From the NCBI GenBank assembly GCA_011109175.1, contig RDEW01000006.1, positions 967,232-1,031,231 of the forward strand: DNA of 64,000 nucleotides. Direction: 5' to 3'. The stretch comes from Dicyema japonicum (taxonomy: Eukaryota > Animalia > Dicyemida). A program made the translations under genes and the position numbers. The number at the start of each line of letters is the position of its first letter. Position 1 is the stretch's first letter. The notes beneath the pieces were generated by a model that made no database searches, was not told the origin of the DNA, and saw only the letters and a program-made list of their open reading frames with translations. Shown here one piece after another: positions 2,140 to 63,820 of the stretch.

Positions 2140-3850
2140 AACTTTTTTTATTGTCAATTGAACAGGTGCTCTAAACAATCTGAGTATAACTGTGGATAGT
2201 TTTAAATGAAAATGATTAAAGAAATCAGTAAATTAATTCATTAATTTTTTTCTTAAAATTATGGTTTTGGCTATTTTTTTAAATTTCGTGGATAATGTAT
2301 TGATGAATTCTCACAGTGATGTGAAAGTGTTCTCAGTTAGACCCTGTATATGTATTTAGAAAAATTTAACAAAAAATAATTAAAAAATTTCAAATATAAT
2401 AAAATATTATCTAAGAAAAAAAGTAAATTTGTGAACAGAATAATAATCAGCTACAATGAAACCAAATTTATCAAATTAAATAATCAATTTATTCGATTAT
2501 AGGATAAATAGGATTTTTTGGAAAATGACAGTTATTAATCTCCCGCGCCATTTTCATGTATCCTTGTATACCCCATGATTGGCCCCATCCATTTTTCAAG
2601 AGCCAATACTTTTCTCCTTTAGAAACCCCATAACCGACAACAGAAACTCCATGGTCAAATTTTAAATATAAACAATTTTTAATATGATATACTCCTAAAA
2701 ACTTTAATTGATATTTACCTCGAAAATATTTTTGAAACTTAACGCGAGAACTATCAACATTAACAGTAACAGGACCAAATTTGTTGAGAACATGCATAAG
2801 CATTTTTTCGTCACCATCTTTAAATTTTTTATAACCAGTCAAGGTAAATTTAATATCTGGTTGACTAGCATATTTGCATTTACCCTCCTATACGATTATT
2901 AAAAAGGTACTTTTTCTTTATATGGATATCGTTTTACAGAATTAATTCCTCCTTTTTTTTGTACGTATTTATACACAAGTTCAGCACACCCTCCATTGCA
3001 TCCTCTATTCTCTGAACAATCAATTATGTTTTGTTCGCTCATAGATATAAGTTTATTGTGTTTGATTGCAAAATGCGACTCCAATGTGGCCAACTAAATG
3101 CATTAAACAGTAGTTTACTGCACCAAATGCATAACATGACCCACATATACTTCCTTGATCTTTTATGCCAGTTACACAATTTCGTTTTATCCAATTAAAA
3201 GATGGATGATATCTTTTTTTATTTACATGAATTGAATAATCTTCAAGTAATTCATCTTCGTATGTATTCTGAGTATTATAAAAATCAAATTTTCTTGGTT
3301 TGCTAATTTCTCTTCTTGTCTACAAATATTTATTGTGAATTAACCATGTCAGCAAATTGAGTAATTCCCAATTCATATGAAAATATTCCTTGTTTTGATA
3401 GTAAATTGTGTTTGTCAGTCAATCTCAAGTTTTCAGTAAAAATAGCCATTCTAACTTGGAGTTCTACACCTGAATATGATTTATCTGTAAAAAGTGAAAA
3501 TAAACTTAACTATATTTTTCCATAAAATTATTCCATTGGATTTCATAATATTCATCCACTTTAATGGAATGATTGTTTGATTCGTATTTGAAATGAATTT
3601 TAGATGATATAACATAATTGAACAATAACAGAAAAACATGGATAATTAGGCCGATCATTTTAATTAATTCTGTCTATTTTTATTTAAATACTTTTATAAT
3701 ATTAATATATAAAATAATACATCACTAAAAGTGCAACTCCCAACATTACACAGCCACGACGTGTCTTATGAGAAAAACATACATCACCCCTCTCCAATTT
3801 ATATTCCCCAAACTACTTCTCCCATAGAGTAGTTGCTCAGAAATTTTAAG
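2140..3850. repeat. About 1.7 kb segmental duplication unit (cathepsin gene plus flanks), second copy at about 10375-12060
   Basis: Near-identical colinear sequence, including the downstream AT-rich block, the introns and the upstream LINE 3' fragment. Confidence 0.9.
2489..3658 (-). CDS. Cathepsin L-like papain-family cysteine protease, 348 aa, 6 exons
   Basis: Introns at 3485-3510, 3320-3344, 3094-3118, 2888-2910 and 2695-2718 (26, 25, 25, 23, 24 nt, all GT-AG) give an open 1047-nt CDS. It has a signal peptide ([19 protein letters not shown]), an ERFNIN-like [28 protein letters not shown], and catalytic C (QGSICGSCYAF), H (FDHGV) and N (LKNGW). Confidence 0.93.
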
Positions 3851-4289: not shown

Positions 4290-5722
4290 TGAAGAAGAAT
4301 TCTAACCCAGTTTACTTCTCGGATGAAGACGTGAAGAATGCGCTGCGTTTTACAAGAACAACGTACTCTGCCGGTCCCGACAACATTCCAGTAGTGTTAT
4401 TGAAGAACCTTAGAGATATTGGAGTCGGTCTTACAACTATTCAATTAATTGTAATGTAATACCGTTGTTATGGAAGCAAGCCAACATCCGAACTATACTG
4501 AAACCTGGAAACCTAAGGAAGATCCGGCATCATTTAGACCTGTGTCATTGTTATGTTCCATATCGAAATCCTGGAAAGGCTTGTGCTTGGAAGAATAAGG
4601 CTTTCTCAGAAAAGGATTTTTAACACGGATTTAAGAGCGATTGTTCTACATCAACGTACCTACAGAAATTAACCAACTTTATTAGAGATGGATTTTCAAA
4701 CAACCAAGGCATTTGAAAACAGTCTTATGTTCCATTGATATTAACAAGGCCTTTGATTCAATTTCGAGAAAATATTATCAAAGAAAATTTTCCAGTCGAG
4801 ATCCCGGGGAAGTTTAAACTTTCGATAAAAATTCTTAAACGAAGGACGTGTATGCCTCGGAAGGACTGAAATCAGTCTCACGTATTCTCCCAAACGGTGT
4901 CCCCCAAGGATCTCCTTTATCCCCGCCTTATTCAATTTATACCTGGCAGACCTCCCGACACCGGAATCCAATAACGATGTTCTACTCTCATATGCGGACG
5001 ACATTGTTTTGGCCTCGCGTGATCGGGATATCCAAAATGCTACAGAAAGATTACAAATTAACCTGGACCGACTCAACGCCTGGTTAATGAAGAACCGACT
5101 CACGATAAATTCCAGAAAGTCGGTCACGTCTATGTTTACTTCGGTCAAAAGGTTGGAGAAGATGACTGTCGAGTTAAAATTGGACAACATTGAAATCCCC
5201 TTCACCAAATGTCAGAAGATCCTGGGCGTGACACTGGATGCACACATATGTTTGTCACCACACGTGGCAAACATTGTTCTAAAGTGCGAGAAGAGGATCA
5301 ATGTATTATAATTGTTATCTGGAATATGGAAGACAGGTACCCACCCAGTCTTGATGAACATTTACAAGCAATACATCGAACCATGCTTCTTGTACGCGTG
5401 TGCTTCGTGGGGACCTTCATTATCATGGACGAACACTAAGAAAATTGAGGACGTTCAAAAGAAGGCTTTCAGAATGACGGAGCGGTGGTCTTGTGGGAGA
5501 CACAGAACCGGACCGACTACTCTGGAGGCCCTCATTAAACAAAACTCCGGCATGCGGGAAAATGGCCCTGCAAATACAGTCAGCCGCCCTGTACGAGCTT
5601 ATGTGGGTACGAGGGAGGCACACCGGGAAAGAATGAGGATTTTGGCGGAGCGCATCTGGATCACGTGATAGTTAGTTTTGATTTTACCGTGGTTTTGGGT
5701 GTTAATTAAATAAATAAAAATT
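4290..5722 (+). mobile_element. 5'-truncated APE-type LINE (Jockey/I-like, here family A), RT plus 3' end
   Basis: AGPDNIP, GVPQGSPLSP and YAD(D) motifs with frameshifts. C-terminus RPVRAYVGTREAHRERMRILAERIWIT* is followed by the tagttag 3' UTR and an A/T-rich tail shared by many copies in the window. Confidence 0.85.
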
Positions 5723-10720: not shown

Positions 10721-11886
10721 TTATTCGATTATAGGATAAATAGATCTTTTGGAAAATGACAGTTATTAATCTCCCGCGCAATTTTCATGTATCCGTGTAT
10801 ACCCCATGATTTGCCCCATCCATTTTTCAAGAGCCAATACTTTTCTCCTTTAGAAACCCATAACCGACAACAGAAACTCCATGGTCATATTTTTTAAATT
10901 TAAACAATTTTTAATATGATATATTCCTAAAACTTTAATTGATATTTACTAGAATATTGTTGAAACATAAAGCGAGAACCATCAACATTAACAGTAACAG
11001 GACCAAATTTGATGAGAACATGCATAAGCATTTTTTCGTCACCATCTTTAAATTTTATATAACCAGTCAAGTTAAATTTAATATCTGGTTGACCATCATA
11101 TTTGCATTTACCCTCCTATACGATTATTAAAAAAATACTTTTCCTTTATATGGATATCGTTTTACAGAATTAATTCCTCCATTTTTTTGTACGTAATCAT
11201 ACACAAGTTCTACACACCCTCCAACACATCCTTTATCTACTGAACAATCGACCATGTTTTGTTCGCTCATAGATATAAGTTTATTGTGTTTGATTGCAAA
11301 ATGCGACTCCAATGTGGCCAACTAAATGCATTAAACAATAATTTACTGCACAAAATGCATAACATGAACCACATCTACTTCCTTGCTTTTTTATGCCAGT
11401 TACACAATTTCGTTTTATCCAATTAAAAGATGAATGATATCTTTTTTTATTTACATGAATTGAATAATCTTCAAGTAATTCATCTTCGTATGTATTCTGA
11501 GTATTATAAAAATCAAATTTTCTTGGTTTGCTAATTTCTCTTCTTGTCTACAAATATTTATTGTGAATTAACCATGTCAGCAAAGTGAGTAATTCCCAAT
11601 TCATAGGAATATATTCCTTGTTTTGATAGTAAATTGTGTTTGTCAATCAATCTCAAGTTTTCAGTAAAAATAGCCTTTCTAACTTGGAGTTCTACACCTG
11701 AATATGATTTATCTGTAAAAAGTGAAAATAAACTTAACTATATTTTTCCATAAAATTATTCCATTGGATTTCATAATATTCATCCACGTTAATGGAATGA
11801 TTGTTTGATTCGTATTTGAAATAAATTTTAGATGATATAACATAATTGAACAATAACAGAAAAACTTGGATAATTAGGCCGATCAT
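10721..11886 (-). CDS. Cathepsin L-like protease copy 2; last exon disrupted as assembled (pseudogene or assembly error)
   Basis: Same exon/intron structure as copy 1, with [13 protein letters not shown]. Three 1-nt deficits in or at runs (10890-10895, 10857-10859, about 10745) shift the frame just before the catalytic His. Confidence 0.8.
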
Positions 11887-11964: not shown

Positions 11965-12170
11965 AAAAGTACAACTCCCAACATTACACAGCCACGACGT
12001 GTCTTATGAAAAGGACATACATCATACCTCTCCAATTTTTATTCCCCAAACCACCCCTTCTACAGAGAAGTTGTGTTGGATCGCAAGAAGGCGCACGAGG
12101 AGATGAGAAATCTAATTGAGGCCTTCGAGATCACTCAATTAATTTAATAATTAAATTAATTATTGGTGTT
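11965..12170 (+). mobile_element. Family-A LINE 3' fragment upstream of cathepsin copy 2 (shorter copy at 3725-3850; inverted copy at 14060-14250)
   Basis: Ends VGSQEGARGDEKSN / EAFEIT-like, followed by the caattaattt tail; homologous to the C-terminal GIT* motif of family A. Confidence 0.75.
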
Positions 12171-12174
12171 TTTG

Positions 12175-12690
12175 GATTAATAAAAATAATAATAACAGAT
12201 CTGGATGTTGATTGTGACTTCCAGAATTTTCTGATGTTTGCTCAAATAGGTTTCGGTATTATCCAAATTAGCTCCACCGTCTTTCATAGTCTTTATCGAA
12301 AGTGAATAATGTGGTGACTGATTTCTCCAGGCTAATTCATAAGTGGTTATTCTATAACCAAACGTTAAGACGACCCAGGCGTTAATACAATCTTTATGTT
12401 GAAACCTGAATATCTTTATCATGTGAAGCCAAAAGAATGTCATCTTCATAAGTCAGTAGGATGTCGTTTTCGTTTCTTGGAATGGACGATCGGCCGTAAA
12501 TAGGTTGAACAGTAAAGGGGAGAGGGTGATCCTTGGGTGACGCCATTCGGTAGAAGTAGAGATGTTGTCCCTTACAACCAACATCAGAGGTCCTCTAGAG
12601 CCTGTTCTACGGCTGAGGTCAAAACGGGCAAAGTAGGCGGTCTTATAAAGGATTTTTTGTTTTTTCCCACACGCGGTTGTAGAATCTTGG
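12175..12690 (-). mobile_element. LINE RT fragment
   Basis: Minus strand GVTQGSPSPLYC / LFNLFTAD region; paralogous to 26880-27780. Confidence 0.75.
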
Positions 12691-12892
12691 AGATCCTAAA
12701 AAAAAAGTATTAAATGTTGGAGTATGAATTTATTCAAGGAACTAAAATGAATATATAAAAAATTAATAAAATAAAGATTTTTGAATTTAAAAAATATTTG
12801 TTAAAAAACTATAAGTGTAATCAAAAACTTGAATTATGAAAACCCAAAAATTTATTAACCATAAAAACAAATGTCATCCAATTAAACAATCA

Positions 12893-13030
12893 AATTATTC
12901 AATTATAGGATAAATGGGATTTAAAGGAAATACACAATCATTCATCCCACGTGCCAATTTTATGTAGCCGTTTATACCCCGGTCTTTGCCCACGCATTTT
13001 TTATGAGCCTATACTTCTCCCCTTTATAAA
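12893..13030 (-). pseudogene. Cathepsin last-exon relic (a second relic at 13812-13868 spans the catalytic-Cys exon/intron junction)
   Basis: With one frameshift it reads GEKYRLIKNAWGKDRGINGYIKLARGMNDCVFPLNPIYPIIE*, homologous to the copy 1 C-terminus. 13812-13868 matches intron 3 and SCYAFGA. Confidence 0.8.
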
Positions 13031-13044
13031 TTTTCGAAGACATA

Positions 13045-13965
13045 ATGAAGTGGTAAAGTACATCCATCTCATATTTGTCGAGTTTATGGAATCAAATAAA
13101 GCAGGAAATTGAAAGGACATTCGGTTCAGTCAATATTGACGAATCAAAATGTCGAAATTAGAGTTGACACGTCGATTTTGACAGAAACAAAATTACAATA
13201 CAATAAACCTGACATTTTTATGTATGACAAAACAAAGAAGGAAGTAACTTTAATCGAAGTGGGCACTACCTCACAAGACCGACTAAAACAAGTTGAAGTT
13301 GAGAAACTTCACAAATATGACTTGCTTGCAAATGAATTTTCGCTACTCTATGAATGCCAAGTGAATATTTTCCAGCGGGTTTGACATGGGATGGAGTTGT
13401 CTCAGATGCTTAAAAAATCATATGGATAAATTATCTATTGAAGAATCAACGAGGATTTACATCCAATCGGTTGTTCTGAAGAGAACGCTCGAAAGTATGC
13501 TCATTGAACATAAGTATGGGATTAAGGTATACGTTGAAGAGTACGCCTCTGCTACTCCCCAACTTGTAGAACTGGCATTCCGTCCACAGTCCACTGGACC
13601 CTAACAGAGATATTTCAACTGAATATGATGTGGAGATATGGAGTAACAGGGAGTTTATGGCACACTCTTCTTCTAAGAGAAGAAGGATTACTAGCATTCT
13701 GGACTAAAATCCGTTTAATTAGTTAATCTACTCATTAATTTTTTTATAAAAATATTATTTATAACTATGGAACGTTTTTTTATAAAAATATATTTATTAC
13801 AAAATACTACAATATGGCCAACTAAATGCATTAAACAATAGTTTACTGCACCAAATGCATAACATGTAACAGGAGGTTATGGCAAACTCTATATCGACTG
13901 AATCTGATGGGAGTGACAGGGACTCTTTTGGCACACTCTTCTTCTAAGATTATTATTATTAACTC
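13045..13965 (+). mobile_element. R4/Dong-like non-LTR retrotransposon 3' part with restriction-like endonuclease; 3' end duplicated
   Basis: HNEVVKYIHL, NKPDIFMYDKTKKEVTLIEVG, EKLHKYDLLANE, TWDGVV, YIQSVVLKRTLE. The 3' UTR gcacactcttcttctaag occurs at about 13660 and 13930, the latter with a (TTA)n tail. Confidence 0.8.
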
Positions 13966-24990: not shown

Positions 24991-26051
24991 GACGTAATGT
25001 ATGAAGCAGCATCAGAAATAAGTAAATAAAAATTTTTCCTATCAACATTGAGTTTGCGGATGACGTCATCAATAATTTGACATATAAAGGGATGTATTAA
25101 TTGCAATACAATCAATTAAAAAAATATTTTTGTGGATTCTTTAATGTTCCAAAAAGACAATTAACATACTTATCTTTGGCAACATCAGTTTCGTCAATTA
25201 TTAAAACAATTTGTTCACTTGAAATTGTGTTAATAATTTGTGAAACCATCCTTTCAGCAAGAATGTCTCTACATTTGGTTTCTGAAGGAACAGAATGTCC
25301 ATATTTATTTAAAAGCGAAATATCGTAACTTGTGAAGTGGAATATTTGCTGATAAAAATGCATTTGCAAGATCCATGGCAAAACAATCAGTAGTGACCTC
25401 ATTTTTAATATGAGTATCCAAAGTATTATTCGTATTTGAGATTCTCAGAATTTGCTTTTTGGAATTCCGATGCTTTTCAATAAGCCATTGCTTGTTAGCG
25501 GTCACGTAAGAATTGCAAAATTTTCAGAATAATTTTTTATCCAATGAAGATGAAAACTCTTTAGGATATTTATTAACAATAGAAGAAATTTGTTTTTAGG
25601 TATTATAGAAAAACAGACAACAAGAACCATGTGCAGTTTGAAATTATATCAATATTAAAAAATTGCTATAATATTTTATAATTCACGTGATTAGTTATTT
25701 GTGTAACCGTTGGTGTTATTATTATAATTTTTTTTATTATTAATAAATAAAAAGTTGCTNCATGTGCAGTTTGAAATTATATCAATATTAAAAAATTGCT
25801 ATAATATTTTATAATTCACGTGATTAGTTATTTGTGTAACCGTTGGTGTTATTATTATAATTTTTTTATCATTAATAAATAAAAAGTTGCTTATTCAAAT
25901 AAAAGTTGACGGTAATAGTAAAAAATTGACTTTGTTGCATTTATAACTTTTTATATAAACATTTTTTATTAAAATAATTTGATTAATAGAATTTTAACAC
26001 TATAATTGAACAAAGAACTCAAGTTGACTTTGTTGACTTTTGGTTGCCCTA

Positions 26052-33539: not shown

Positions 33540-34160
33540 AAGAATAGTTATGAAAGAATCGCCTAACTGCCTGCAGTGAGAAGTCCGTCACAACCCTATT
33601 TACTTCAGACAAGAGACTGGGAAGACGGACGGTCGAACTGAATGCAAACAATGAAGCTATTCCTTTTAGACGATCTCAAAGGATCCTTGGGGTGACTTTT
33701 GACATGTACATGTCATTTTGTCCATGTTGAAAACGTCATAACAAAATGCGAAAAAAAACTTATGTATTGAAATGCCTCACAGGCTTATAGAAGATCGGAA
33801 ATCTTACTGTATTGAGTACTATATACAAACAATACATTGAACCATGCATCTCTTACACATGTGGTATCTGGGGCCCACTCATCTCTTGGTCAAATGTCTT
33901 GAATATCGAGGCTAGCCGGAGAAGAGCCTCCAAAATCACGGAACGCTGGATTTTCCAACCACCAATGCCTCTTGAAGCCATGATAGGAATGAACCATGGA
34001 ACGCGCCGTCGTGATTGCGAAGATCCAGTCACTTGACCGATACGTGCTTGTATGGGGTCGAGGGAAGAGCATCGGGCAAGATGAGATCTCTGCTAGAGCG
34101 TGCTGGGAACATGTGATTAGTTAGTTTTTGTAACCGTGGTCTCTGGTGTTATTATTATTA
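33540..34160 (+). mobile_element. Young 5'-truncated family-A LINE
   Basis: Near-identical to 63270-63820; ends ttagttagtttttgtaaccgtggtctctggtg(tta)n. Confidence 0.88.
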
Positions 34161-41399: not shown

Positions 41400-43850
41400 C
41401 CCATGAGAATCATTCGTCCATTTGGGCTCCATAAAAATGAGTAAAGCTTGCGCCGAAACGCTGTCGAGTTGGCTGTGCCTCTCTTGTATTGGAAAGGAGG
41501 TCCCCAGGCTGGAAAAATAGCTTAGCAAACTTTACACTACCACATACTGACCACATTCTCTTGAAGATCTCGAACCTCCGGAAAGCCAGGAAGATCCCAG
41601 TAAAAATCCCTAAAAGAGTACGAATTGTTGCAGCAACGTGTCTTTCAGATGCCATTGATCACGCACTATCTTCTGACAGTTGGGAATCCTGGCTAAAACT
41701 TATATGCTTTGCACCTGTCGCACTCGGAATACCTACAAAGGAATCTGAAGATAGTAATAGAGAAACAAATTCCCGGCTCAACTTATCCGAGAAACTGAAA
41801 CGAAACATAATCAATTTTAGCAGTAATAACATACACGCAATACTTGAACAGCCACTTAATGTCAATGAGGTCGAAACCAGAGGAGCATACACCAAAGATG
41901 ATCCCAACAAACTAAAGGAGAAAGTAAACCGAAAACTTCTAAAGGGCGACCTGCGGGCAGCTCTATGGGTTATCACGTCTGATGGCACAGTATTGTCTTG
42001 TACCCCGAGGTCTTGAATACCTTAATACTGAAGCACCCAGATGCACCGACTGACTATGAAAAGTTTTTGAATCCTGAAGGAACCCCGGAGATATCATTAC
42101 AGAATCCGAAGTGCGCCGCGGAATAGCTTCCTTCGCGCTAGCAGCGGAAGAGGCTTGGAAGGGTTACGTCCTGGGCATATTAAGGACCTTACGTCCACTT
42201 ACACCTCGGAAGCTGGACGCTGTCTTGTCAAATCAATTACGGACCTAATCAGAAAAATGGTTAACGGTGACATCCCAGAATATGCCAGAGAATTGCTCTT
42301 CTCCGCAAGGCTACTTGCATTCAAAAAACCAAATGGGGGAATCCGCCCCATTCCGGTCGGAAACTATTTTAGAAGACTTGCAGCAAAAGTAGCATCGACC
42401 CTGGTGAGCCGACAACTTGGAGAAGAGTTCTTTCCTAAACAAATGGGTGTTAGTATCCAGAACGGATGTGAAGCTGCGGTTCGCAGCAAGGCGTTTCTTC
42501 ACACACAGAAATATTTCAAATGAATGCATTGGAATCAAGTTGGACATAACGAATGCCTTCAATTCTCTCAGAAGAGATAAAATTATGAAACGTGTTGGAA
42601 GAGGGCTCCAAAGCTTTTCCTTCTTGTCAATTTATTCTATGGGGAAGATACGTTGATAAATTATATTTCCTCGGATGCCCACTCAGCGAAGAAGAACTCA
42701 AGAACCATCTACTTTCCAAAAATGAAGAATTAACACGCAACTCGCAAAAAGATTGTCATGTCTCGACTCTCACACATTATTCTTTCTTATAAGAAACAAC
42801 ATCGGACTACCCAAGCTTTTATATCTACTCCGATGTTCACCCTGCTACGAACAATACGACAGTCTACTCTCGATAGACAAATCTCTCAAACAAACTGTTG
42901 AGTAATTAACGTCCGCTTCGATGAACTTAGTTGGAAGCAATGTAAGCTTCCTTCTGGATTTGGGGGTATCGGTCTAAGATTTGCGCTGGAGGTTGCGTAC
43001 CCGGCATTTCTGTCTTCTCTCTCAAACTGCAGTCATTTGACACGGCAAGGACTTCGCTGGAATGAGTCATTTGACGAAGCTTGTTGGAAATGAAACGAGT
43101 CTGACTCAAAATCCCCGAAGACACAACGAAGCAAAGTAATTGGGATAACATTGTCTGCTCCAAAATTTTGGAAGACCTTAAAAAAAAAAATCAACATCGT
43201 CTGGCTTGTTTGGTGTCAGCTTCAAGTGGAAGGAGTGGAGCATGGCTTTGACGATTGATATCAGACAAAGGCTAGGACTAGATGTTTTTCAGGAGCTCCG
43301 ATGCCGATGCGGGAAAATAGTCGATACGAAGGGATTGTACCCGCTGTATTGCAGAAGAAGCGGCGGTCGAGGACCATGTCACGCAGCTCTGAACGATGTG
43401 ATCGTCAAAGCAATGAAGGCTACAGGCTTCCCATCGCATCTTGAACCAGTGGGTCTCGATCGAGGAGATGGAAAGAGACCTGACGGGATGACCCTTTTCC
43501 TTTACACATCCGGAAGATCTTTGTTCTGGGACGCAACTTGTGTTGACACATTTCAAGCACGAATCTTTTCAAATCGGTTCAGACACCTGGAGCAGCTGCT
43601 TTTAAAACCTAAAAATCAAGAAATATTCTTGCCTCGGGACCGCTATCGATTTACTTATGTTGCGGTAGAGTCATCGGGAGCCGTTGGTCCAATGACGGCT
43701 GATTTCTTGCGCGAACTCGGAGGAATGCTTGCCAGAAAGAAAAGGGATCAACGAGAATGGTTATAGCTGAGACAAAAGATTGGAATGGCCATACTCCGAC
43801 GGAACTCGTTTGCGATTCACGCAGCCGGATTCCTCAACTAACATTTGTTT
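41400..43850 (+). mobile_element. Degenerate CRE-clade non-LTR retrotransposon (RT plus zinc finger plus RLE)
   Basis: IPKRVRIVAA, GLRPGHIKDL, KKPNGGIRPIPVGNYFRRLAAK, KLDITNAFNS, CRCGKIVD, LEPVGLDRGDGKRPDG, WDATCVDT, AVESSG, IGMAILRRN. Confidence 0.88.
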
Positions 43851-43922
43851 TTTTGTAAAATAATTATAAATATATAAATAATTGAAAAGTATTTAAATAA
43901 AAAATAGACAGAATTAATTAAA

Positions 43923-44398
43923 ATGATCGGCCTAATTATCCTTGTTTTACTTTTATTTGATAATTATTTTATTTCATCTAAAATTCATTTCAAATACGAA
44001 TCAAACAATCATTCCATTAAAGTCGACGAATATTATGAAATCCAATGGAATAATTTTATGGAAAAATTCGGTTATCTTTATTTTCAAATTTTACAGATAA
44101 ATCATATTCGGGTTTAGAACTCAAAGTTAGAAAGTCTATTTTCATTGAAAACTTAAGAATTATTGAAAAACACAATTTACTTTTTAATCAAGGAAAATTT
44201 ACCTATGAACTGGGAATTAATCAGTTTGCTGACATGGTTAATTCACAATATATTTTGTAGACAAGAAGAGAATTTATCAAACCAAACAAATTTGATTTAT
44301 ATAATACTCAGAATGAATACGAAGATGAATTACTTGAAGATTATACAACGCCTGCAAATGGAAGTTCTCGAGATCATTTAATTAATTTAGATAATTAA
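43923..44398 (+). CDS. Propeptide-only (I29 inhibitor domain) cathepsin L-like paralog, 141 aa, 3 exons
   Basis: Exons 43923-44070, 44097-44236 and 44261-44398 (introns 26 and 24 nt, GT-AG) form an open 426-nt CDS. It has a signal peptide, ELKVRKSIFIENLRIIEKHN and GINQFADM, then stops before the mature domain. Confidence 0.72.
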
Positions 44399-44517
44399 AT
44401 TAACGATTGATGTTCTTGGGTATTAAATAAAAAATTTTAACATTTAAAATTTTTAAATCCCCAGATATTTTGGATGTTTCAATCTGGAGGAAAAATACGT
44501 AAAACCATAATATTTAT

Positions 44518-44626
44518 TGTGTGGGGTCAGGGAGGAGCATTGGGCCAAGTTTAGGTCTCTGCAGAGAGTGCTGGGATCACTTGATTAGTTAGTTTGGTGT
44601 AACCGTGGTCTCTGGTGTTATTATTA
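44518..44626 (+). mobile_element. 109-bp family-A LINE 3' insertion with TSD
   Basis: 18-bp TSD taaaaccataatatttat (44500-17, 44627-44). Confidence 0.9.
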
Positions 44627-44899
44627 TAAAACCATAATATTTATAGTTTCACCCACGTGTGTTTCAAACTAACTAAGCGATTCCACTTCGCAGTCATATG
44701 CACCTCTCTCAAATCATTCTGCTCATTTCATTTTCCTTTTGAAATGCTTGAGATCAGTATCTAGTATCCCAGGTATTGTGATTCGCGGGCTTTTACATAA
44801 ACGTAATCCAAGCACTTTTCTATCGCTATATTAGCTGGGGTATCCATTTTCAATCTCAGTATATGTCCGAAGAGCCTCCATCTAAATCAGTCATCTCGA

Positions 44900-45960
44900 G
44901 ACTCAAAGGATTAGTGGAGCAAACAATACTAAAAGCTTTTTTTATTTTCATTGGCCAGTTCAAACCGGACATTGTCCTCAGCTGTCTTTGATTAAATGAG
45001 TCTATGCCCTGTTCCTCAGCTTTGGACATCTCCCACGTTAATGAATTATATAATAGACTGGTTTAACAAGGGTATTATATAGTCTTAGCCTGAATGATGT
45101 ACTTGATCGTATTCCATCAATCCAGTCCTTTTTAATTTTGTTCAGCTGTAACGAGGGTCTTTCTTCGAAGAATGTCCTCACTGTCTGCAAGTAATGATCC
45201 GAGCTTATTGGTCTTTCTCCATTGTTAATCAGATCTTCTTTCCATTCTTCTACTATCAACTATTTACGTTTTGCAAACATTCATGGTTAGGTACCATTTT
45301 TTGAGTTCATTGTGAGCTACTTCCGATAGGCGAATATGGACTGATCTATCTCTCGATATAAAGTCAGTAGCGTAAATGGATTCTTCTATGTTACCTTCAT
45401 AAAATTTTCGAAAATCAAGAACTTTTTCATATTCAGAGTCAGAGTCCAGAAATCTTTCCACTGTCTTCATTCTACTACTGAGAGACCTCTACGCACTATG
45501 TTGAAGGTCCTCGATAATTCGATGCCGATGATTGTAGTAGCGTTTTGGTATCTCTGATTTTCAACGTTAGCCACTTTTGGATCCATACTATATCCTTCGT
45601 TGACCTCCCTGTCCTGAATCCACTATGTCAAGATAGTCGTCCACTCGATCCTTAGGCTGTTCAGTGTAACCAATGCCAAGATTTTACATGGAGTATTGAG
45701 CGAAATTATTGGGCGTAGATTTTCCACTGGGCCAACTGGCTTGTTTGGTTTCTGGAAGGGATTAAAAGTCTAGATCCAATCGATAGGTATTCTTTTCTGG
45801 AAACATAGATTTGAGAAGTTCTATAATTTTATCAATTTTCACATAGGTTTATATTTTAGGAATTCTGGGTTAATGTTGTCTGGTCCAGGGGAACGACCAC
45901 TTTTCGATTTGTCCATTGCTCTTACTTCCTCAAAGGTAATTGATTTTTCTCGTTCAGGTT
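44900..45960 (-). mobile_element. Degenerate RTE-like LINE RT fragment
   Basis: PGPDNI, DFISRD, LKKWYLTMN, RLYNTLVKP. Confidence 0.7.
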
Positions 45961-46049
45961 ATCCAGTGAATCTTGTAAGCGAGTACCCGCTGTGTGGATG
46001 CACTGATTTCTTTCCCAGAATAAAGTCGTCGACGTAAGCAAGGAATAAG

Positions 46050-46500
46050 GAATCGTCGCAACCGTAGGAGGGCATGTCGCTCATGAATAGGTCGAAGAGA
46101 ATCGGAGAGAGGGGGATCCTTGCGAGACCCACTCCGGCAGATATTTAGTGACTGAAGATGTGGAATGGGAGGTTACTCTTGGTCAAATCCAATTTTTCAG
46201 GTTGTTTGGAATGTTAGAGCCATAGATCTTCCTAATGAGCAGGTTTCTCGGTATTGAGTCAAATGCCTTATGTATGTCAATGGAGCACATAATGGTCTTT
46301 TGATGTCGAGGTTTGCGTTGAGGGTTATTGCAACTGGGACAATTTTTGGCGAAGATTAATATGTTTTAACCCGTCCTTATCGCAAAATGTCGGAAGGAAG
46401 GCTGTATGAACACCAGGAAAAGATGCGAAGACTGCTGAAGGAGGCCGGGATCACCTGAATTTTCTCATTCTGGTATAACGGTGGTTTTTGATTAATAAAT
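46050..46500. mobile_element. LINE RT fragment (minus, 46050-46390) abutting a family-A 3' end (plus, 46390-46500)
   Basis: PLSPILFDLFMSD and AYVDD on minus; RRLLKEAGIT* tail on plus. Confidence 0.7.
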
Positions 46501-57713: not shown

Positions 57714-58015
57714 GGCTGTCCCTCTAATCTCTTGGACGATTATCTTGAAGATCGAGGCTAGCCGAAAAGGAGCCTCTAAAATCACGGAATGCTGGATTTC
57801 TGGAGAGTTCCATCGACCAATGCCTCTAAAAGCCTTGATACGAATGAACCATGGAACGCGCCGTCGTGAGTACGAAGATCCAGTCACCCGACCGATACAT
57901 GCTTGTGTGGGGTCGAGGGAGGAGCATCGGGCCAAGATGAGGTCCCTGTTAGAGCGTGCTGGGATCACCTGATTAGTTAGTTTGTGTAACCATGGTCTCT
58001 GGTGTTATTATTATT
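57714..58015 (+). mobile_element. Family-A LINE 3' copy
   Basis: RPIHACVGSREEHRAKMRSLLERAGIT* plus (TTA)n. Confidence 0.88.
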
Positions 58016-63074: not shown

Positions 63075-63820
63075 AATGAGGCTCTTTGAGTTTTGTGGAT
63101 CTTTCAATTTTCAAAAATTATTACTTACGTCTCCAATAATGGCGGATCTATTCATGGCGGATATCACCACACCGGACGCCGAAAATGATATTATTCTGAC
63201 TTATGCCGACGACATAGTAATTGCGTCACGTGATCAGAACATTGCAACAAAATCTGGACCGACTTGACGAATGGCTATCTAAGAATCGCCCAGCTGCCAG
63301 CAGTGAGAAGTTCGTCACAACCCTATTTACATCAGACAAGAGACTGGGAAGAGGAAGGTTGACCTGAAGGCAACAATGAAGTTATGTTGATAACGTCATT
63401 ACAAAATGCAAAAAAATAATGTATTGAAATGCCTCACAGGCTTATAGAAGATCGGAAATCATACTGTATTGAGTACTATATACAAACAATACATTGAACC
63501 ATGCATCTCTTACACATGTGGTATCTGGGGCCACTCATCTCTTGGTCAAATGTCTTGAATATCGAGGCTAGCCAAAAAAGAGCCTCCAAAATCACGGAAC
63601 GCTGGATTTTCCAACCACCAATGCCTCTTGAAGCCATGATACGAATGAACCATGGGACGCGCCGTCGTGACTGCGAAGATCCAGTCACTCGACCGATACG
63701 TGCTTGTGTGGGGTCGAGGGAAGAGTATCGGGCAAGATGAGGTCCCTGCTAGAGCGTGTTGAGATCACGTGATTAGTTAGTTTGTGTAACCGTGGTCTCT
63801 GGTGTTATTATTATTATTAA
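63075..63820 (+). mobile_element. Young family-A LINE 3' copy
   Basis: TYADDIVIASRDQ and YIEPCIS; near-identical to 33540-34160, with a (TTA)n tail. Confidence 0.88.

Follow-up and report, generated by a model that had tools for sequence, protein, structure and literature searches.

A probable young truncated cathepsin L-like duplicate with an intact propeptide-only reading frame in Dicyema japonicum

A cathepsin L-like fragment in the genome of Dicyema japonicum, here called copy 4, is probably a young truncated duplicate that carries no evidence of selection, and it belongs to a family with continuing turnover of its copies, in a genome rich in repeats. The fragment lies at 43923–44398 (+) of the window, by which we mean the whole stretch of 64,000 nucleotides that was analysed (GenBank assembly GCA_011109175.1, contig RDEW01000006.1, positions 967,232–1,031,231 of the forward strand; Table 1). 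Its open reading frame (ORF) of 141 codons, spliced by homology, comprises a cathepsin L signal peptide and propeptide only. How the truncation came about, and that copy 4 has no selected function, are both conclusions that we infer from the comparisons described below.

Table 1 Cathepsin-derived and repeat features of the window
Feature	Position	Strand	Description
Copy 1, intact full-length cathepsin L-like gene	2492–3658	−	348 aa; five micro-introns of 23–26 nt
Copy 2, full-length by homology	10744–11886	−	Compared with copy 1, catalytic exons carry +2, −1 and −1 indels
Copy 3, two cathepsin scraps	13793–13866 and 12832–13032	−	Closest to copies 1 and 2
LINE-like repeat, 3′ end	43206–43865	+	ORF 43206–43766, then A/T-rich tail; abuts the cathepsin fragment
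Upstream block, ~60 nt	43863–43922	+	Putative core promoter and 5′ UTR; TATA-like TATTTAAATA
Copy 4, exon 1	43923–44070	+	ATG at 43923, signal-peptide-like N-terminus, start of prodomain
Copy 4, micro-intron 1	44071–44096	+	26 nt, GT..AG; position matches full-length copies
Copy 4, exon 2	44097–44236	+	I29-domain helices with the ERFNIN and GNFD motifs
Copy 4, micro-intron 2	44237–44260	+	24 nt, GT..AG; identical to the corresponding intron of L041
Copy 4, exon 3	44261–44398	+	C-terminal propeptide to G130 (44362), then 11 repeat-derived codons; TAA at 44396–44398
Dispersed repeat (‘family A’), 3′ tail, 5′-truncated	44364–44433	+	Supplies the stop codon; ATTAAA at 44394 and 44422
Short interspersed repeat	44517–44627	+	Copies at 57903–58014, 63704–63814 and 34048–34158, 87–90% identical
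Decayed LINE reverse-transcriptase remnant	44856–46132	−	SPILFDLF, YVDD and C-terminal LYNTLVKPV-type segment, read by eye

The gene model of the initial annotation, with an intact ATG, a signal peptide, both micro-introns and an open frame, was reproduced and gave a product of 141 aa; the retained part contains no stop codon and no frameshift and keeps all four splice dinucleotides. A complete I29 domain is present in the product (Pfam PF08246; residues 42–101 aligned to model positions 1–59 of 59, E=3.6 × 10−18; 66.1 bits against a cut-off of 24.4), including the two motifs found family-wide, ERFNIN (E57-R61-F65-N68-I72-N76) and GNFD (G89-N91-F93-D95). Read by eye, the N-terminus (MIGLIILVLLLF, then DNYFISS) resembles the signal peptides of the full-length paralogs. 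A GT..AG stretch of 27 nt at 44364–44390, itself of micro-intron size, crosses the end of the cathepsin sequence, and its splicing would give a 132-aa product ending in PANGNN; a non-homologous 23-nt intron proposed by a greedy intron finder was treated as an artefact of that method. The 141-aa product has no exact match in a collection of 15 billion proteins, which is weak evidence, and a word-indexed protein search for relatives of 78–247 aa returned none, a result that is uninformative given its 5-mer prefilter. A literature search found no paper that treats Dicyema together with cathepsin, and cathepsin is absent from the supplements of the D. japonicum genome paper (PMC6736024).

The limits of the fragment were defined by comparison with its paralogs. 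DNA homology to copies 1 and 2 spans 43863–44359 (88% identity), and that to the nearest paralog, L041, extends to 44363. The cathepsin homology therefore stops at 44359–44363, 4–6 residues before YHPSFNW at the start of the mature enzyme, which bears out the earlier claim that it ends shortly before the pro/mature boundary. In line with the earlier report that catalytic exons are lacking downstream, a tblastn search with the mature domain (E≤1) was blank on the + strand of the window beyond copy 4. A misjoin in the assembly at about 44363 would place catalytic exons after copy 4 in the real genome, and such an error might be suspected in an assembly that is repeat-rich and scaffolded from short reads, mate pairs and PacBio data (PMC6736024). 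We consider it highly improbable, as independent unitigs from three genomic libraries run through the junction at single-copy depth (28 versus ~24, 387 versus ~280–340 and 20 versus ~24, respectively) and no run of Ns lies close to it, the sole N of the window being at 25760, away from copy 4. All of these unitigs begin at 44334, the position of the first 31-mer that is unique to the junction and separates copy 4 from its near-identical paralog, and they reach 44577–44616. Because the unitigs of three libraries cross it, albeit with only 26–30 bases on the cathepsin side, the junction is taken to be real. The four sequencing runs compared with the window, all of one sample and study, have the character of genomic DNA: the introns are in place and splice joints are absent.

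On both sides the cathepsin sequence meets dispersed repeats, so that it forms a 500-bp island amid transposon scraps. The LINE-like repeat on the left has at least 883 candidate copies in the genome and a read depth hundreds-fold over that of single-copy sequence; most matches to it stop at 43865, its A/T-rich tail ends at about 43855–43865, and its other copies terminate in A-runs. The dispersed repeat on the right has at least 121 candidate copies, and every match begins at 44368, which fits a local copy that has lost its 5′ part; fuller units of ~140 nt are found at 12048–12187 (+) and at 4634–4773 of L045. A Pfam search of the flanking ORFs, including one piece of the reverse-transcriptase remnant, gave no match, and the repeats are labelled LINE-like on account of their A-rich 3′ ends, their copy numbers and the reverse-transcriptase motifs read by eye.

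The block immediately upstream of the ATG is common to all sampled paralogs, with homology in 39 of them beginning at 43843–43895 (mostly 43852–43870) at 75–97% identity. Similarity between paralogs starts ~55–70 nt before the ATG, and the upstream identity of 75–97% holds even where coding identity is ~77%. The 60-nt block is thus either a mini-promoter under tight conservation or the mark of a boundary that the duplicated units have in common.

The arrangement suggests how copy 4 may have arisen. A DNA-level rearrangement would have removed the catalytic exons and joined the remaining fragment near-seamlessly to a repeat. What is left measures 500 bp, with the 3′ end of a LINE to its left and the 5′-truncated tail of another retroelement to its right. 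It keeps the 60-nt upstream block, the signal peptide, nearly the whole propeptide and both micro-introns, and the AT-rich repeat tail closes its frame after 11 codons. The LINE-like tail of the initial annotation does close the frame with extra codons and a stop; these codons number 11 (S131–N141), the 13 given previously being the count from copy 1. An origin through RNA, as a chimeric retrocopy or by LINE 3′-transduction, would be compatible with an unselected duplicate and concerns the origin only; it would account for a 5′-truncated LINE tail fused nearly seamlessly to the fragment and for a LINE 3′ end immediately upstream in the same orientation. We regard this route as improbable, since both micro-introns are kept, the fragment includes the TATA-like upstream block, and no target-site duplication was found by eye around 43863–44435. 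An 8-nt match, TAACATTT, was discounted as a target-site duplication as it sits within the left repeat. DNA-level rearrangement is favoured over retroposition because both micro-introns were retained, and the homology limits, the repeat tail, the introns and the upstream block together support the proposal of a partial duplication with termination provided by a retroelement.

The other cathepsin copies of the window differ in their state of preservation. Copy 1 has the CGSC, DHG and NGWG motifs that contain the catalytic Cys, His and Asn. Unless its introns have moved, copy 2 reads out of frame for ~50 codons about the active-site His, and this copy may itself be a disabled pseudogene. Copies 1 and 2 share 98.2% DNA identity over the pro part and 93.9% over the mature part; the pro region is thus better conserved than the mature region, whereas the opposite is usual, and 5′ gene conversion may account for the contrast. 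The region upstream of copy 2, including its repeat tail, is present as an inverted duplication (11968–12186 (+) and 14246–13962 (−)) that brackets the copy 3 scraps. Copy 3 was rejected as the missing half of copy 4: it is encoded on the other strand at a distance of 30 kb, amounts to a pair of short scraps and is nearest to copies 1 and 2.

Genome-wide, the cathepsin L family proved to be large and to include many fragments. A DNA search with copy 4 gave 42 matches, 40 of 187 candidates were scored, and the loci were compared with the copy 1 protein. This census identified at least 41 cathepsin L loci, 31 of which extend to the C-terminal region, while 10 are truncated or scrapped (L019, L025, L039, L041, L043, L044, L045, L047, copy 3 and copy 4). 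The truncation of L039 coincides with an assembly gap, and several of the truncated copies (L041, L045 and L047) contain stops or frameshifts. L043 (G000:C334:946654–947143, −) provides a second intact propeptide-only ORF, of 139 aa, with a prodomain identical to that of copy 1; it originated when an A-run at the pro/mature boundary lost 1 nt, a change that leads into KDIIHLLIG and a stop, with physical truncation soon after. L042 (G000:C334:952827–953320) is otherwise full-length and has lost the acceptor of micro-intron 1 (ACAT for ACAG) together with one intron nucleotide. Propeptide-only ORFs thus arise repeatedly (copy 4 and L043) in the D. japonicum genome, which has been described as 49% repeats with very short introns and for which stranded RNA-seq (BioProject PRJNA496385) and an assembled transcriptome (GHAB00000000) are on deposit (PMC6736024).

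The closest relative of copy 4 among the loci scored is L041, which lies ~107 kb away on the same contig and is 92% identical overall. L041 is a pseudogene with a 13-nt deletion in exon 2; it has lost the CGSC motif and ends at residue 196. The two loci differ at 3 of 223 bases over 44141–44363 (1.3%); exon 1 has 12 differences in 148 bases and the upstream block 9 in 60. Because the divergence is so uneven along its length, copy 4 is a recent mosaic, with its recombination point near 44140, in which exchange with a paralog took place recently. In the 3′ half the divergence is about that between two alleles, the reported heterozygosity of D. japonicum being 1.24% (PMC6736024).

This relationship also bears on the prodomain motifs, which had been described as more canonical than those of the full-length copies. 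The description is literally true against the two full-length copies of the window, and the states concerned turn out to be those of the family majority or to be shared with a pseudogene. GINQFAD is the majority state across 40 paralogs, GITQFAD being peculiar to a small clade with copies 1 and 2; the Ile of ERFNIN occurs in all paralogs except copy 1 and L043; and the IIEKHN of copy 4 is also found in L041. The motifs accordingly place copy 4 within its family and are not evidence that it was tuned as an inhibitor.

We compared the substitutions of copy 4 with those of the family. For the prodomain of copy 4, pairwise omega (Nei–Gojobori) came to 0.94 with L041 and to 1.01 with L042, relative to a family baseline with a median of 0.40 among 152 pairs of apparently full-length copies. 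The replacements confined or almost confined to copy 4 are L/F13D, Y49F and N50D in exon 1, and Q59K, A63S, T66I and T/A115E, accompanied by two silent changes. At the nucleotide level the copy-4-specific changes amount to ~10 replacement and 2 silent, for which the neutral expectation is 9.8 and 2.2 (318 replacement and 72 silent sites). Four of the copy-4-specific changes affect bases on which the 39 paralogs all agree, or all but one do; N50D abolishes a NKS sequon found throughout the family, and position +5 of micro-intron 1 is T in copy 4 and A in 39 of 39 paralogs. The substitution pattern is thus neutral-looking, with omega about 1. With only ~12 changes, 10 or more replacements would also arise under an omega of 0.4 with a binomial probability of ~0.14. 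A singleton test at invariant sites did not cleanly separate intact from degenerate copies.

The copy-4-specific differences lie mostly in adjacent doublets or triplets (43959–43961, 44068–44070, 44075–44076, 44087–44088 and 44315–44316), and the number of independent events is therefore smaller than that of nucleotide changes. Such clustering suggests multi-nucleotide events or micro-conversion from unsampled paralogs.

The intact frame was evaluated by simulation, in which 33% of copies remained intact after 12 random substitutions and 21% after 16; a copy counted as intact if its homologous part had kept its ATG, an open frame and all four splice dinucleotides, and indels would lower these figures. 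Among the approximately ten fragments of the sampled family, one or two are expected to be intact and two were observed. Since 21–33% of neutral copies as young as this one stay intact, the open frame of copy 4 is unsurprising, and it would be owed to youth rather than to demonstrable selection.

A different reading sees in copy 4 a gene of recent birth that is expressed as a secreted inhibitor of the I29 propeptide-like type, with a retroelement tail as its terminator. Its targets would be the expanded cathepsin L enzymes of the parasite itself or host cathepsins in the cephalopod renal sac. The full I29 domain, the signal-like N-terminus, the intact splice sites and the conserved upstream block are what such a gene would be expected to have; ATTAAA signals follow the stop, the junction is present in the k-mers of the raw reads, the top solved-structure match is the free inhibitor crammer, and free propeptide-like proteins are established as potent cathepsin L inhibitors (PMC4089206). 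Several of these points count directly against an unselected duplicate. The ORF, ATG, splice dinucleotides and upstream block are intact, unlike those of several other truncated copies; the propeptide is kept almost to its natural end, with the segment that occupies the active-site cleft; and the ATTAAA after the stop, the compatibility with an omega of 0.4 (P~0.14) and the crammer match point the same way. We nevertheless judge the inhibitor reading unlikely. Purifying selection was not seen, with omega about 1, altered family-invariant sites and the NKS sequon lost; the nearest relative is a pseudogene, only 1.3% diverged in the 3′ half; an intact frame is expected by chance, and sibling fragments are numerous. 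The absence of the exact product and of relatives of 78–247 aa from the protein collection adds weak evidence. The initial proposal of a selected inhibitor paired with its enzymes thus gained no positive support, as omega is about 1, the motifs are ancestral or pseudogene-shared, intactness is expected and about one-quarter of the loci are truncated.

Rather unlikely, too, is that copy 4 has been caught at birth, ~1–8% diverged, with transcription already driven by the 60-nt promoter of the family and the free propeptide already secreted. If so, it might buffer the cathepsin L arsenal of the dicyemid or act on host proteases, and sibling ORFs such as L043 would imply that the family repeatedly spawns such inhibitors. 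A young unselected duplicate, the reading that we prefer, could yield a similar molecule: if the upstream block that it has kept drove transcription of copy 4 and the transcript were spliced, the result would be a free propeptide of ~120 aa for secretion, and this product could, as cathepsin L propeptides in general can, occupy the active-site cleft of its paralogs. Such predicted binding is not evidence of a selected role, because the capacity would be inherited with ancestry.

Stand-alone inhibitors of this type (MEROPS I29) include mouse CTLA-2 alpha and beta, Drosophila crammer, Bombyx BCPI and salmon salarin (PMC4089206). Like CTLA-2, crammer and BCPI, the copy 4 ORF is a cathepsin L proregion with a full Pfam I29 match and no peptidase C1 domain, and its best solved-structure match is crammer (2L95, E=2.9 × 10−11). 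The Y49F and N50D replacements recreate the KFDK of crammer, which may be coincidence. Unlike these inhibitors, copy 4 diverges by only ~1–8% from a pseudogene paralog. In place of the Gly critical to crammer (G73) and to BCPI (L77–R80 region), alignment by eye shows Lys in the Dicyema family; since this is a trait of the whole family, it is not specific to copy 4. At copy 4 residues 104–107, in the propeptide segment turned towards the active site, all paralogs have PNKF, PRKF or PSKF, where human procathepsin L has NGF.

The procathepsin L zymogens offer a second comparison, as residues 33–103 of the copy 4 prodomain align to the propeptides of human procathepsin L (1CS8) and Fasciola cathepsin L1 (2O6X). 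The Cys, His and Asn motifs of the enzyme are found in the full-length paralog, copy 1. Unlike these zymogens, copy 4 lacks the mature domain entirely. If it were expressed and selected, copy 4 would be an unusually young and mechanistically transparent inhibitor born from the propeptide of its own enzyme; it would have followed the route of CTLA-2, crammer and BCPI in a poorly studied, endocytosis-feeding parasite with an expanded cathepsin L family. The loss of 3′ exons, the transposon flanks, the sibling fragments and the neutral-looking substitutions are features that it shares with the truncated or processed pseudogenes of tandemly amplified protease families, although its frame, splice sites and upstream block are intact, unlike those of typical pseudogene fragments. 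On present evidence copy 4 is better read as ordinary debris of the expansion of its cathepsin family, and the useful outcomes are the family census and the recurrent propeptide-only ORFs of this genome.
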